DNA of 49,925 nt, from NCBI GenBank assembly GCA_000388065.2, contig KB932202.1, one strand, 5' to 3'. This stretch comes from Fonticula alba ATCC 38817 (taxonomy: Eukaryota > Protista > Nucleariida). The notes beneath the pieces are model-generated. The model searched no databases and was not told the origin of the DNA. It was given only the letters and a program-made list of their open reading frames with translations. The translations under genes were made by a program, and so were the position numbers. This document shows, piece after piece, positions 659 to 49,656 of this stretch (position 1 is the stretch's first letter; each line of letters opens with the position of its first letter).

Positions 659-3126
659 ATGTCCTCGCACATGGCTGTCACCCATCTGCAAAATGAGTTC
701 CGGCGGTTCCTCAAGAACCCGGTCCCCTTTTGCCTGGCCTCCCCTCAGGCTAGCAACTTCCTCGAGTGGTTCGTGCCTCAACTGACCCCTCCTGCCCCTC
801 ATCTCCTCTCGCTGCTCATGTCCAGCCCCCGGCTGCCCATCTCACCCTCGTTCTCTCCCTCTCTCTCTCTCTCTATGGCACGAGTCAAATAGTGCTGAGA
901 ACAGGAGAGTATCACAGGCGCCACACAGCGTCATAGTGTTGCATCGGATGTCCTTGATCCCCGGGCCTTGGTTGGGCACTCAAACAGGGATTATTGCCTG
1001 ATTGGCCCGCCGGACTCGCCCTACTTCGGGGGGGTTTACCATGGGAAGATTGTTTTCCCAAACAACTTCCCCTTCTCGCCACCGAGCATCCTGATGATCA
1101 CTCCCAGCGGTATGTTGTTTGTGGATGTATTTCTTCGCTCCTCCCCTCGCGCCCCCTGTCTCTCTGAAAGGGGGCTGCTCGCATCCCCCCCCCCCAGGCC
1201 ATGCCCCCCCCCCCCCCCCCCCCCCCCCCCCCTCGTCTCTCCCCACGAATCCCTCCCCCCTCGCCTTTCTAACTGGTGGTCCCGTCCGGTGGTTTGGTGG
1301 CTCTGTCTCTGTAGGCCGCTTTGAGACCAATACGCGCCTTTGCCTGTCGATGAGTGACTTCCATCGTACGTACCTGCTATCTCCCTCCCCCCTGCCCCCT
1401 CTCCGGGGCCACCATGTTACTACCCCTCCCCCCGCCCCCTGTAATATGGGGCGGTTCCCTCATCATCGGCTCTGATTGTCTCGCCCAAAATGAGCTTCCC
1501 CTGCCTCTTCCTCGCGGGCCTGAATGATGCACTGCCGACCCACTTACCATCCTTCCCATCCATATACCCACAGCCAAGACCTGGTCTGCCTCGTGGACGG
1601 TGTCCTCCATCCTCCTTGGCATCCAGTCCTTCATGCTTGAGGAGACCCCCACGCAGGGGAGTATTCACCCCCCGACGAGCTTCCTCGAGCGTCGAAAGCT
1701 GGCTGCCGCGTCGCATAGCCACTGCCTCTCGAACCCTCGGTTCTGCAGTACGTGCTATGTCTTCCCCCCTCGCGCTTGGCCGTGGATTCTTTCGCGGTTG
1801 ATGTCGCATCGCCTCTTGCCCGCTTCCCATCTCCTCCTCCCCCCCCCCTCCCCGCTCCTCCTCCTGTGCCGATGCCAGCTTTCCTGCCGGCCCTAATTGA
1901 CACCACAACCGCCATAGGTCAATTTCCCCAGGTGAAGAGCGACATCCAGTCGGGTCGCTTGCCGCCGGTGGACATGTCCCCCGCGGCTCTCAAGGAGCTG
2001 GAGCAAAAGTGCCTTGCGCTGCTTTCCCTGCCCAAGAAGACCGCCGGCTCTGCCAGCGCATCTGCATTGCCCCCGGCCGCGGCCGAGTCGCAGCCCTCCC
2101 AGGAGGCCGAAGAGCAGCCGCCTGTCGCCGAGCCTGGAGACGACGTGCCCACTTCCTCCTCACCAACCTCCTCCGCCCCCTCCGCCTCCACTGGCCATGT
2201 GGATACGGGCGTCTCTTCGACAGTGGCCCCTGCGCAGACTCCCACCACCACCACCTCCAGGACCAAGCCCAAGATTAGTGCCGCTGCCCTCCTCAAGCAG
2301 AAGGGCCGTAGTGTACGTCTCCTTCTGCCAGATCTCGTTGCTTTCACTGCCGGGAGAGCGCCCTCCTTGTTTTTGATGAGTGTCTCCCTTTTTTCCTTCG
2401 TTCATGTCCCTTCGCGCGTTCTCGTGTTTGTGCGAATACCTTCCTTCCTTCTCCTGGCGGTCCAACCATTGTCGGGGCCGGGAGGGGGAGGGGGGGGGGG
2501 GGCCCTCCTATTCTGAGTGTATCCTTGTGTCTGTTGTCTGTTTGTGGAGATGGGCTTCCGCGCGAACATCCCCTCCTCTCTCTCTCTCTCTCTTCACCTC
2601 TCCCCCCTCGCCTTCCATCCTCCTCGAGTGTGCCCCGTTGTCCTATATCCCCCTTTTCTATAGTATTTGTGTCAACCCCCTCCCCCTCTTCCCCCCTCTC
2701 CCCCTCTTCCCCCCTCTCCCCCTCCCAGGTTTCTGCCTCCCTGTCTCTCGCTGCATCCTCCTCGCCATCCAGCGTGTTCTTACCGACATTACACATCATG
2801 CATCCGCCATGCACACACGCACACGCACACGCACACGCACACGCACACGCACATGCACACACGCACAAACATATGCACGTGCGCCGCCGCGTGTACAGTC
2901 GCCAGTTCTCCAGCCCAGCCTCTCGCCGCTGGTGACCCCGGCTGAAGAGGATGACTCGCCGCTGGTGTCGTCAGCCCCCTCCGGCACCGGGCCCGGTGTG
3001 GCGATAGCCTTCAGGGACCTTTGGTCTCCCAGCTTGCTGGCCGTGCCTCTGGTGCTGATCGTGCTGTACACGGCCATGGCACTGACGCGGTCAGCCTTGT
3101 CATTCGTCTTTGGGACTGTTCTCTGA
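659..3126 (+). CDS. UBC6: Ubiquitin-conjugating enzyme E2, UBC6/UBE2J2 family (tail-anchored ERAD E2), 6 exons
   Basis: Exons about 659-768, 988-1109, 1315-1365, 1574-1747, 1918-2312 and 2899-3126 splice in frame (GT..AG). They give ...[82 protein letters not shown].... [11 protein letters not shown] is the UBC6-type active-site motif. A Ser/Pro/Thr linker and a C-terminal hydrophobic anchor ([17 protein letters not shown]) follow. Confidence 0.93.
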
Positions 3127-3210
3127 TTCAAGCAGGGAAGACCACTTTTGGGGGCTCTTGTAACGTCGGCAGCGGCAACGGCTGGTCTTCCTCGGAGATG
3201 GATGTATGGA

Positions 3211-3290
3211 TGTGTGTGCATGTGTGTGCATGTGTGTGCATGTGTGTGCATGTGTGTGCATGTGTGTGCATGTGTGTGCATGTGTGTGCA
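3211..3290 (+). repeat. Perfect 10-bp tandem repeat (TGTGTGTGCA)x8 just downstream of the UBC6 stop
   Basis: Eight identical units read directly from the sequence. Confidence 0.95.
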
Positions 3291-47156: not shown

Positions 47157-47727
47157 GAGACGCGGCGCGCCCCAGAGCACGAGCGAGCGCGAAAGGGCCA
47201 TTGAGCTTGTCTTTTCCTCTTCCCCCCTCCCCCCTCCTCTTCCCACTGTTTCTGCCTTCTTCCTTGTGTGCTTCCTATCCCAGGGGAGAAGTCTTGGGGG
47301 GCATCTCTCCACCTCGTCTTTTCCCTGTCGCGCCCTCATTGTTCTTCTTTCTCTTTCTCCTTCTCTCTCTCTCTCTCTGTCCCTCCATCTTTCAGGAGGG
47401 GGCGGGGGCGCGCGAGCTGGTCCTCTCCTCCTCCCCCTCTTTTTCCTCCTTTGTCCTGGCCACCATGTGTCGGGAAGAAATACACCGAGCTTCGAAATGT
47501 GGCGTGTGCATGCATGGGGGGGGAGGGGTTGTTCTTCGTCGGGAGCGGGAGGGGGTATCTAGTCGAGTTTATGGTTTATATTAAGGGCGGTTTTTCTCAA
47601 GGGGGGGGGGGAGGGAGAGGGGTGGCGGCGAGGGCCGTGTGGTCCATGGGCCTTTTGGTTCTCGGTCGGGAGAGGAGGCAGCTGTTTTCGGGGGCTTCTC
47701 CGAGGAGGGCACGGCTACATCTGTGTA

Positions 47728-49656
47728 TTAAAAGCCACGCCCGCGCCTCACTGGGTGACGGTGTTCTTGAAGGCCGTGTGAAGAGCATACAGAACACGCA
47801 TGGTCACACGGGCATCCTGAGTGACAATCGCTGTACAAGTTCCAGGGCAGGAAGCAAATCGGCGGCATGTTAGTGTGTGTGTGTGTGTGTGTGTGTGCGC
47901 GTGTGTGTGTGTGTGTGTGTGTGTGTGTGTGTGTGTGTGTGTGCGCGTGTGCGTGCGTGCGTGTGCGTGCGTGGGCGTGCGTGTGCGTGCGTGCGCGTGT
48001 GTGCAGACGTAAAGATGCGGAAAGAGGGGAAATGGGCCGGCAGGACATACCCTGAGCGTGCCATGCGCCAGGAGTGATCTCCAGACGCTCCATGAGGTCA
48101 AGCGCCAGTTGGACATTGTGAATCTTCTGATCGGCGGTGGTCGGGGTCGAATGGTACTGGGACGGGGGGATGTAAAAGCCACCGAGGGACCCAATCAGCA
48201 GCAGCAGGTACAGGCCGTCGTGGAAGGGGACGGCAATGTCACCGCCGGGGATGTCGGAGCCCGTTTCTCCGGTGGAGTGCATGCCAACACCCGGGGTGAC
48301 AGTAACATCAAGGGGGGCCAGGTGCTTGTTGACAAAGAGGAAGAGCAGCTGCACACATGGTCATGCAGGGCGATGGCGGTCAGCCGGCGGGGCAAATCGA
48401 CAGGCAGGCGGGCAGGCATGCAGGCACCGAGGAGGTGGGAGAAAAAGAAGGAAAGAAGCTCCACATACACGCTGCACACTGGCCAGCTTGGCCTCAGCGC
48501 CCGGGTCGAGCAGCTCATCGAAGGCATCGCGCTCGAAAACACGCTCAGTCGAGTCCAAGGTCTTCCGGGACTCCACATCGGTGAGCGCGGTCGTGGCCTC
48601 GTTACTGCCCCAGGCACTTTCGTCCTCGGTGATCGTATGGCGCTGGGTCTTCTGCAGGGTGGTGCCGCTGTGCTGAGTCTCCCGGCGAACGACACTGATT
48701 TCCAAGTTCGAAGGCAGCTGGTAGGGGCAGCGGAATTCGTGCGCCATGGCCACCAGCAGCCGGCAGATGGAGACAACATCCTTGTTGAGGATGCCTGGTA
48801 GGTCACACGGGAGAGGTGAGTGGCTTTTTACCCGGGAGGGGGGGGGGGGGCGGTCATATAGGAGGGTTGAAGAGGCAACCAGGAGAGAGAGAGAGAGAGG
48901 GAGAGCAGGGAGGAGGGCAGGTAAATGGGCAGACATACCGTCGATGATGTCCGGGCTCATCTCCAGACCGACGCGCTCGCGCAGGAAACGCAGCACAACG
49001 GCCAAGTTGCCGCGCTTACCGCGGTCAGACACCGGGCCAGTCGGATCCGAGTGAATGGCCACCTGGAGGGTTTTCTCTGCATTTCACATGCGCACGGGGA
49101 GGCAGATCCGAGGGAATGTCAGCCATCCTGCTGGATATTGGGATCCTGGTCCACAGGGAGGTCGTGTCGGGGAACGTACCGAGGAACAGAACCAGGAGCT
49201 GACCATCATGCAAATCCTCCACGATGTCACGAACATAGACCCGGTCCTCACGAAGGTGCTGGTTCAGCCAGGACATCAAGATCTGGCGGCAGCCACCCGC
49301 GGATCAGCAGGGGGGGGGGGGCGGGCGTTAGCATGAGTCGCGGGGATAAAACGCCCACTCAATGGCGAGCGGTCAGGGAGGGCGGAGGGCGGAGGGGAGC
49401 GGAGGGTTCTGTGCGCACACGGCGGAATCGCTGGTACTTCGGGTCGCCCAAGGTAGTTTGATGGACATAGTAGGTGATGGCTGTGGAGGATGACCATGGA
49501 GGGCGGGGAGAGAGAGAGAGAAGCAAGGAGAGGAGGGCGGGAAGACAAAGACAGAGGAGAGGCGGCGTTAGAGAGGGCGATCAGGCAGTATGCGTGATGT
49601 CTTGTTGCCGAAGGGGGTCAGCCTCGGCATATGGCCCGGGGACACATACTCGACAT
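47728..49656 (-). CDS. PARV: Parvin (tandem calponin-homology protein of the ILK-PINCH-parvin complex), 7 exons
   Basis: [44 protein letters not shown] (CH1), the linker [60 protein letters not shown] (CH2), and the ending [16 protein letters not shown]. These segments are colinear with animal parvins as I recall them (ERDAFDTLF, FVNKHL, DLKSTLRVLYNL). Confidence 0.9.
47874..48003. repeat. (TG)n/(TGCG)n compound microsatellite in the last parvin intron; similar arrays occur at about 62-200, 2815-2865, 27522-27555, 30324-30410 (GA)n and 31221-31267
   Basis: Read directly from the sequence. These arrays generate the many spurious VCVC, HTHT and RERE ORFs in the track. Confidence 0.9.

Follow-up and report, generated by a model that had tools for sequence, protein, structure and literature searches.

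Fonticula alba is a nucleariid amoeba from the branch that is sister to the fungi, and a stretch of 49,925 nucleotides of its nuclear genome (contig KB932202.1 of GenBank assembly GCA_000388065.2, below called the window) raises the question of whether this lineage has given up one of the bases of the canonical 5' splice site and, if so, what takes the place of the usual recognition. A reading of the window from its letters alone had claimed that intron donors carry C or T at position +4, never A, and had proposed a G opposite this base in the U1 or U6 small nuclear RNA (snRNA). Our analysis confirms that the +4 dialect is real and that neither base composition nor the picking of donors accounts for the pattern; a small number of other protists are known to have dialects of this type. 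Position +4 is the meeting point of two recognition steps, where it first faces position 5 of U1 and then the N6-methyladenosine (m6A) in the ACAGA box of U6 (Parker et al., eLife 2023, PMC10581693), and lineages without +4A are natural experiments on which of these steps constrains it. A literature search for Fonticula donors, snRNAs or METTL16 found nothing specific.

Our sample comprises 42 introns from 11 genes (Table 1), all placed without any donor motif on the basis of spliced RNA contigs (seven introns), public protein models, and continuity, to the exact residue, with Pfam profiles and structurally solved chains. The RNA evidence consists of contigs assembled from two 2012 runs, X1 and X3, in which the words of positions 5531-10985 are represented at fractions of 0.72 and 0.73; aligned over this range, the contigs lack seven segments, each bounded by GT and AG, and therefore represent spliced RNA. 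The donors verified in this way are GTACGT, GTGCGT, GTACAC, GTGCGC, GTATGT, GTGCGT and GTGCGT. Elsewhere, exons were compared singly with profiles or chains, and joined sequences served only for checks of frame and length. The exons of IDI1 cover residues 2-44, 46-95 (extending to 100), 103-154 (extending back to 101) and 156-219 of chain 2icj_A, and since this numbering is continuous, donors 14084, 14358 and 14706 are fixed. Similarly, the exons of UBC6/UBE2J2 cover residues 15-45, 48-86 and 106-159 of 2f4w_A with gaps that are filled exactly by split codons and the exon 3 of 16 amino acids, which fixes donors 769, 1110 and 1366. Profile positions run on across the exons of myosin I (Myosin_head 2-91, 93-152, 153-244, 246-285 and 288 onward), cactin (Cactin_mid 3-101, 103-151 and 152-194; CactinC_cactus 3-46, 47-84 and 85-119, of which the middle piece exposed an exon of 43 amino acids that our parser had skipped) and MetAP1 (Peptidase_M24 2-54, 57-122, 125-169 and 175-208), while Paf67 continuity and a mapped public protein fix four donors of eIF3L.

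The parser combines a codon log-odds model trained on verified exons with a Viterbi search that knows no splice rule beyond GT..AG and charges a flat penalty per intron, so that it is blind to positions +3 to +6. It recovered five of the six RNA-verified donors in its range, and its other picks were mostly GTGCGT, GTACGT and GTATGT. In the right half of the window, public annotation supplied gene ranges and product lengths, and parses constrained to the annotated length are penalised optima. Such parses reproduce the 1058-amino-acid myosin I and a 508-amino-acid gene (27251-29715), and all of their donors have a +4 pyrimidine. The introns of an acetyl-CoA transporter gene (30141-33321, minus strand) were left out because its product, a membrane protein, defeats the codon model and Pfam coordinates are coarse.

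Across the 42 donors, +4 is C in 33 cases, T in nine, and never A or G, which places the 95% upper bound for a +4 purine at around 7%. The first two bases are GT throughout; +3 is A in 20, G in 18, T in three and C in one, and +6 is T in 29, C in 10, A in two and G in one. G at +5 is retained in 41/42, the sole exception being the RNA-verified GTACAC (7340-7345) with A at +5 and C kept at +4, whereas on the exon side -1 is G in 20/42 and -2 is without preference. The commonest hexamers are GTGCGT (11), GTATGT (8), GTACGT (7) and GTGCGC (7). These counts show the F. alba consensus in the window to be (G)/GT-R-(C>T)-G-(T>C), with +4 always a pyrimidine, and its majority of C, absence of A and retention of +5G are those of a GYGCGY-type dialect. 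As GT-AG (U2-type) introns they are ordinary: All 42 are GT..AG, as are the RNA joints (CT..AC on the minus strand), acceptors are CAG in 30, TAG in eight, AAG in three and GAG in one (YAG in 38/42), and the median length is 141 nucleotides. A YTRAY branch-site match, mainly CTGAC or CTAAC, lies within the last 70 nucleotides in only half of them (21/42). A U12-type donor (/RTATCCTT) was sought through ATCC at +3 to +6 and found in none of the 42.

The sequence-only reading had reached a similar tally by hand (about 37 C, about 10 T and no A among 47 donors), and the examples that it listed (769 GTTCGT; 1366, 1748, 2313 and 5962 GTACGT; 6942 and 14084 GTGCGT) are all present. Two of them, 5962 and 6942, are exact RNA junctions, and 769, 1366 and 14084 are residue-fixed via the UBE2J2 and IDI1 chains. 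Its own caveats, that high G+C content favours C and that picking donors by homology could bias the count, carry little weight. The window has 62-70% G+C with a C/T skew by strand that tracks gene orientation, and intron interiors on the sense strand are 0.09 A, 0.48 C, 0.19 G and 0.24 T, yet the probability of 42/42 pyrimidines at +4 is 1.2e-6 given the intron composition and 7e-13 given that of the window. The same genes contain 945 unused GT sites on the sense strand, with a purine at +4 in 380 and a pyrimidine in 565 (Fisher P = 9e-10), and unused GTNNG sites have 78 purines and 156 pyrimidines (Fisher P = 4e-7). Moreover, +4G is absent and T makes up around a fifth (21%) of +4 bases, and G+C content is therefore not the cause. 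Picking bias is likewise small: For 29/42 introns, no in-frame donor with a +4 purine is available as an alternative within 30 nucleotides, most alternatives for the other 13 are ruled out by RNA or exact homology, and about five donors are truly ambiguous (38718, 28108, 28424, 19954 and 21424). Raw hexamer enrichment (GTGCGT, GTACGT and GTATGT at 3-8 times expectation) was not used as evidence because repeats of the types (GT)n and (GTGC)n raise it artificially; such microsatellites and related ones mimic donor hexamers at 100-190, 2816-2870, 3212-3284 and 47947-47999.

Table 1. Introns of the +4 tally, one uncounted donor and unused canonical sites in exons (window positions; aa, amino acids; P0001, public eIF3L protein; P0081, a homologue).
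Feature	Coordinates	Strand	Donor or site	Basis or remark
UBC6/UBE2J2 intron 1	769..987	+	GTTCGT	2f4w_A residues 45 and 47, split codon = 46
UBC6 intron 2	1110..1314	+	GTATGT	exact 2f4w_A and Pfam UQ_con continuity, counting 16-aa exon 3
UBC6 intron 3	1366..1573	+	GTACGT	2f4w_A continuity; next exon residue 2 = chain residue 106
UBC6 intron 4	1748..1917	+	GTACGT	open reading frame only, outside conserved core; weaker
GPI (glucose-6-phosphate isomerase) intron 1	5962..6142	+	GTACGT	RNA contig joint, two runs
GPI intron 2	6942..7165	+	GTGCGT	RNA contig joint
GPI intron 3	7340..7547	+	GTACAC, A at +5	RNA contig joint ('cut +2')
GPI intron 4	7831..7953	+	GTGCGC	RNA contig joint
Oxidosqualene cyclase intron	9186..9346	-	GTATGT at 9346	RNA contig joint
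Oxidosqualene cyclase intron	9470..9595	-	GTGCGT at 9595	RNA contig joint
Oxidosqualene cyclase intron, holds gap 10986-11172	10969..11267	-	GTGCGT at 11267	contig end past 10969 matches 11269
Oxidosqualene cyclase intron	11662..11752	-	GTCCGG at 11752	tblastn homologue P0081 and frame; sole GT before in-frame stop
IDI1 intron 1	14084..14190	+	GTGCGT	2icj_A residues 44 and 46 around split codon
IDI1 intron 2	14358..14539	+	GTGCGC	2icj_A continuous at 100/101
IDI1 intron 3	14706..14928	+	GTGCGT	2icj_A residues 154 and 156 around split codon
Cactin intron	19954..20220	+	GTACGT	motif-blind parser only; ambiguous
Cactin intron	20605..20728	+	GTACGT	Cactin_mid 101 then 103
Cactin intron	20864..20976	+	GTATGC	Cactin_mid 151 then 152
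Cactin intron	21424..21609	+	GTACGT	motif-blind parser only; ambiguous
Cactin intron	21874..21985	+	GTACGA	CactinC_cactus 46 then 47
Cactin intron	22115..22250	+	GTGCGC	CactinC_cactus 84 then 85
MetAP1 intron	23823..24017	-	GTGCGC at 24017	Peptidase_M24 54 then 57, split codon between
MetAP1 intron	23510..23619	-	GTGCGT at 23619	Peptidase_M24 122 then 125
MetAP1 intron	23233..23365	-	GTATGT at 23365	Peptidase_M24 169 then 175
508-aa gene intron	27421..27562	+	GTTCGT	best motif-blind parse giving annotated 508 aa
508-aa gene intron	27671..27754	+	GTGCGC	508-aa motif-blind parse
508-aa gene intron	27823..27950	+	GTGCGT	508-aa motif-blind parse
508-aa gene intron	28108..28248	+	GTACGA	508-aa motif-blind parse; ambiguous
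508-aa gene intron	28424..28539	+	GTACGT	508-aa motif-blind parse; ambiguous
508-aa gene intron, holds gap 29009-29079	28807..29133	+	GTATGT	508-aa motif-blind parse
80-aa gene intron	35159..35292	+	GTACGC	annotated-length parse; weak
80-aa gene intron	35355..35418	+	GTATGT	annotated-length parse; weak
eIF3L intron	37523..37672	-	GTGCGT at 37672	P0001 mapping; Paf67 ~102 then 104
eIF3L intron	37932..38116	-	GTGCGT at 38116	P0001 mapping and gap-free homologue alignment
eIF3L intron	38243..38356	-	GTGCGC at 38356	P0001 mapping and homologue alignment
eIF3L intron 1	38579..38718	-	GTTCGT at 38718	P0001 mapping only
Myosin I intron	43719..43812	+	GTGCGT	annotated 1058 aa; Myosin_head 91 then 93
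Myosin I intron	43998..44181	+	GTGCGT	annotated 1058 aa; Myosin_head 152 then 153
Myosin I intron	44446..44618	+	GTATGT	Myosin_head ~245 then 246
Myosin I intron	44751..44861	+	GTGCGC	annotated length; Myosin_head 285 then 288
CH-domain (parvin-like) gene intron	48349..48468	-	GTATGT at 48468	motif-blind parser
CH-domain (parvin-like) gene intron	48795..48938	-	GTATGT at 48938	motif-blind parser
eIF3L donor, uncounted	37064..37069	-	GTGCGC at 37069	acceptor inside gap 36829-36975
Unused canonical site, myosin exon 2	43813..43818	+	GTGAGT	first six bases of exon, part of GESGAGKT loop; Myosin_head 93-152
Unused canonical site, myosin exon 3	44183..44188	+	GTAAGT	strong context cagg/GTAAGTAC, G-K-Y of SSRFGKYM (switch-1); Myosin_head 153-244 continuous
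Unused canonical site, MetAP1 exon 1	24382..24387	-	GTAAGT	continuous 185 aa: zf-C6H2 and start of Peptidase_M24

The mechanism that we favour, at slightly better than even chances, is that this lineage carries a G as the U1 base opposite +4, so that the 5' end of U1 would read ACGUAC. Under this proposal, position 5 of U1, which is normally a pseudouridine, would have changed to G, so that G-C pairing would accommodate +4C and a G-U wobble +4U, with a clash for +4A or +4G; the ACAGAGA box and U6 as a whole would probably be unchanged. U1 would then have co-evolved with its donor sites as in Mastigamoeba balamuthi, where a U1 beginning ACGUAC accompanies GUGCGC donors (Roy & Bowser, bioRxiv 10.1101/2022.06.08.495308). 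Like Fonticula, this species has GUGCGC- or GUACGU-like donors in which +4 is C, +3 is G or A and +6 is often C. However, this amoebozoan is unrelated to Fonticula, a member of Holomycota, and any shared change would hence be convergent; Fonticula retains a sizeable GTATGT class (21%) that sets it apart, and its own G5 U1 is a proposal. In Entamoeba, U1 (AACAAAC) and the 5' splice site (GUUUGU) have also changed together (bioRxiv 10.1101/2022.06.08.495308), but at other bases, with U at both +3 and +4, and in genomes that are intron-poor and AT-rich. It seems to us an even call whether the exchange of U5 for G in F. alba has been accompanied by a rewriting of practically the whole set of its donors, which number some ten thousand or more, with perfect canonical GTAAGT no longer read.

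A G5 U1 is supported by the restriction of +4 to C and U, by the GTRAGT sites that sit unspliced in verified exons, and by two results that come with reservations. In duplex modelling with an 11-nucleotide U1 5' end, the G5 version AUACGUACCUG is more stable than the standard AUACUUACCUG on 42/42 donors (mean energy -8.8 versus -4.0 kcal/mol), but this gain is largely built in and follows by construction for +4C donors. Similarly, all nine +4T donors have A at +3 compared to 11/33 of the +4C donors (Fisher P = 4e-4), which fits pairing with G because a tandem wobble (GUGUG) is avoided, but could also reflect avoidance of the abundant microsatellite motif GTGTGT (187 copies). On the other side, 14.4 kb of exons show no measurable depletion of dialect hexamers (14 observed versus 16.5 expected from synonymous shuffles), so that this small sample offers no separate indication that cryptic sites are selected against. 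Contigs cannot reveal rare alternative junctions, and rare use of +4A may therefore occur. An Rfam search of the whole window gave no RNA family match at gathering score, with neither a U1 nor a U6 gene; a search of the window for ACGTACCTG returned a single occurrence, which is the palindromic donor at 1366. A F. alba U1 gene beginning ACGUACCU is an unconfirmed candidate only. Finally, two further lineages combine +4C with a standard U1, so the dialect would need no changed U1, and compensation in U1 is found in one of the three known +4C lineages.

This last point leads to the reading that the dialect is real while U1 is standard (ACUUACCU) and the +4 pyrimidine is set otherwise, be it by a U1-associated or tri-snRNP protein, by the hand-over to U6, or by long-term C-biased mutation of a weakly constrained +4 and subsequent fixation. 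We regard it as less likely, but as a serious rival. Its best support comes from Thecamonas trahens and five Mamiellales (Micromonas and relatives), which have +4C or GYGCGY donors and U1 candidates that keep the standard pairing sequence (bioRxiv 10.1101/2022.06.08.495308), and which resemble Fonticula in their GC-rich genomes, ordinary GT-AG introns and a +4 pyrimidine that is mostly C. The composition of the introns (48% C and 9% A on the sense strand) implies mutational pressure in the same direction, and exon-side pairing is weak, as seen from the bases at -1 and -2. Yet with a standard U1, +4A would pair best and is absent from all 42 donors, while G+C content would favour G like C and cannot explain why +4G is missing and T is kept. 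Perfect GTAAGT or GTGAGT sites in exons are also tolerated at the expected rate (three in verified exons, listed in Table 1, versus 2.2 from synonymous shuffles), which argues against a standard U1 as well.

A change on the side of U6, either of the central A of the ACAGAGA box (e.g., to G) or through loss of its m6A with METTL16 or SNRNP27K, appears very unlikely to us. This A does contact +4, and in Saccharomycotina shifts between +4A and +4U track METTL16 and SNRNP27K while U1 (ACUUACC) and U6 are invariant, the loss of METTL16 accompanying a loss of the +4A preference (PMC10581693). Fonticula shares with them the lineage-wide loss of +4A, and their GTATGT corresponds to its minor class. 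However, METTL16 loss leads to +4U, which pairs with the unmodified adenine, and U is found at +4 in just 9/42 donors; C dominates 33 to 9 and does not pair with A, and therefore a changed U6 or a loss of METTL16 fits poorly as the driver. The ACAGA box is, moreover, invariant in all of the 240 species that the same study covered (PMC10581693). Neither METTL16 nor SNRNP27K is encoded within the window. We know of no variant of the ACAGAGA box and thus of no precedent for an altered one. The original proposal of a G opposite +4 consequently survives as a reasonable one in its U1 half, for which Mastigamoeba sets the precedent, whereas its U6/METTL16 half is unsupported. The last alternative, an artefact of donors picked by eye among GT sites in GC- and pyrimidine-rich DNA, deserves almost no credence, because despite introns that are 72% pyrimidine, hexamer counts inflated by repeats and nearby in-frame +4-purine alternatives at 13/42 introns, it is refuted by the seven junctions taken directly from RNA and further opposed by some 30 junctions fixed by exact homology, annotated length or lack of alternatives, and by the probabilities given above for intron composition and decoy GT sites.

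Fonticula is an attractive system in this context, with +4A and +4G absent from every intron checked, numerous introns and a public genome. If U1 does carry G5, a core snRNA and thousands of its targets can change together outside intron-poor parasites, and F. alba would provide a second, independent and intron-rich case of co-evolution between U1 and splice sites as well as a tractable test of U1 pairing versus U6 m6A. On the practical side, gene models of this genome will be wrong where they come from gene finders trained on GTRAGT.

The +4 tally holds in spite of the assembly gaps. The gap at 10986-11172 is intronic, with both sides joined in mRNA and the coding sequence intact, and that at 29009-29079 is intronic in the model that reproduces the annotated 508-amino-acid product; those at 5316-5530, 12887-12907, 13722-13896, 26953-26962, 33373-33418 and 39407-39585 are clear of counted introns. 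The gap at 36829-36975 lies in eIF3L; one exon of this gene retrieved the public F. alba protein H696_01539 (P0001), which is encoded at KB932202.1 2487349-2509805 and maps precisely onto the window. Exon 5 aligns with homologues as far as the uncounted GTGCGC at 37069, which is followed by an in-frame stop, and the Pfam profile Paf67 runs to around 252 and picks up again at 255-256; no in-phase acceptor could be placed beyond the gap, and the acceptor probably sits within it. The public model seems mis-built at this place: Over 36829-37110 (minus strand) it omits 15 well-aligning residues (the KHQDKNLQLAAQG region), and beside the gap it gains a low-complexity stretch of 18 amino acids that resembles a translated intron. 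At intron 1 of the same gene, in-frame alternatives lie 6 nucleotides upstream (GTGACG) and 6 nucleotides downstream (GTGGCT) of GTTCGT 38718; at 38718-38724 (minus strand) the public model uses GTTCGT and the motif-blind parser GTGACG, which is the sole live +4A alternative in our sample.

Regarding the RNA data, 20 further RNA-seq runs of 2026 from nine studies (X5-X24) share the species label ("organism B"), but they probably stem from an organism other than F. alba; X12 and X13 have no reads at the locus, and F. alba is represented only in the contig runs of 2012. At 6371-6386 and 10529, other RNA contigs match a few bases and then continue into unrelated sequence, with a bump in depth at 6259-6440, and these loose ends are probably shared low-complexity words. 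A pyrimidine at +4 also removes the TAA or TGA found at +2 to +4 of canonical GTRAGT donors, and introns contain only 9% A, so that retained introns would often be read through; a stop-free frame of 792 codons (6036-8411, plus strand) crosses three introns of GPI.

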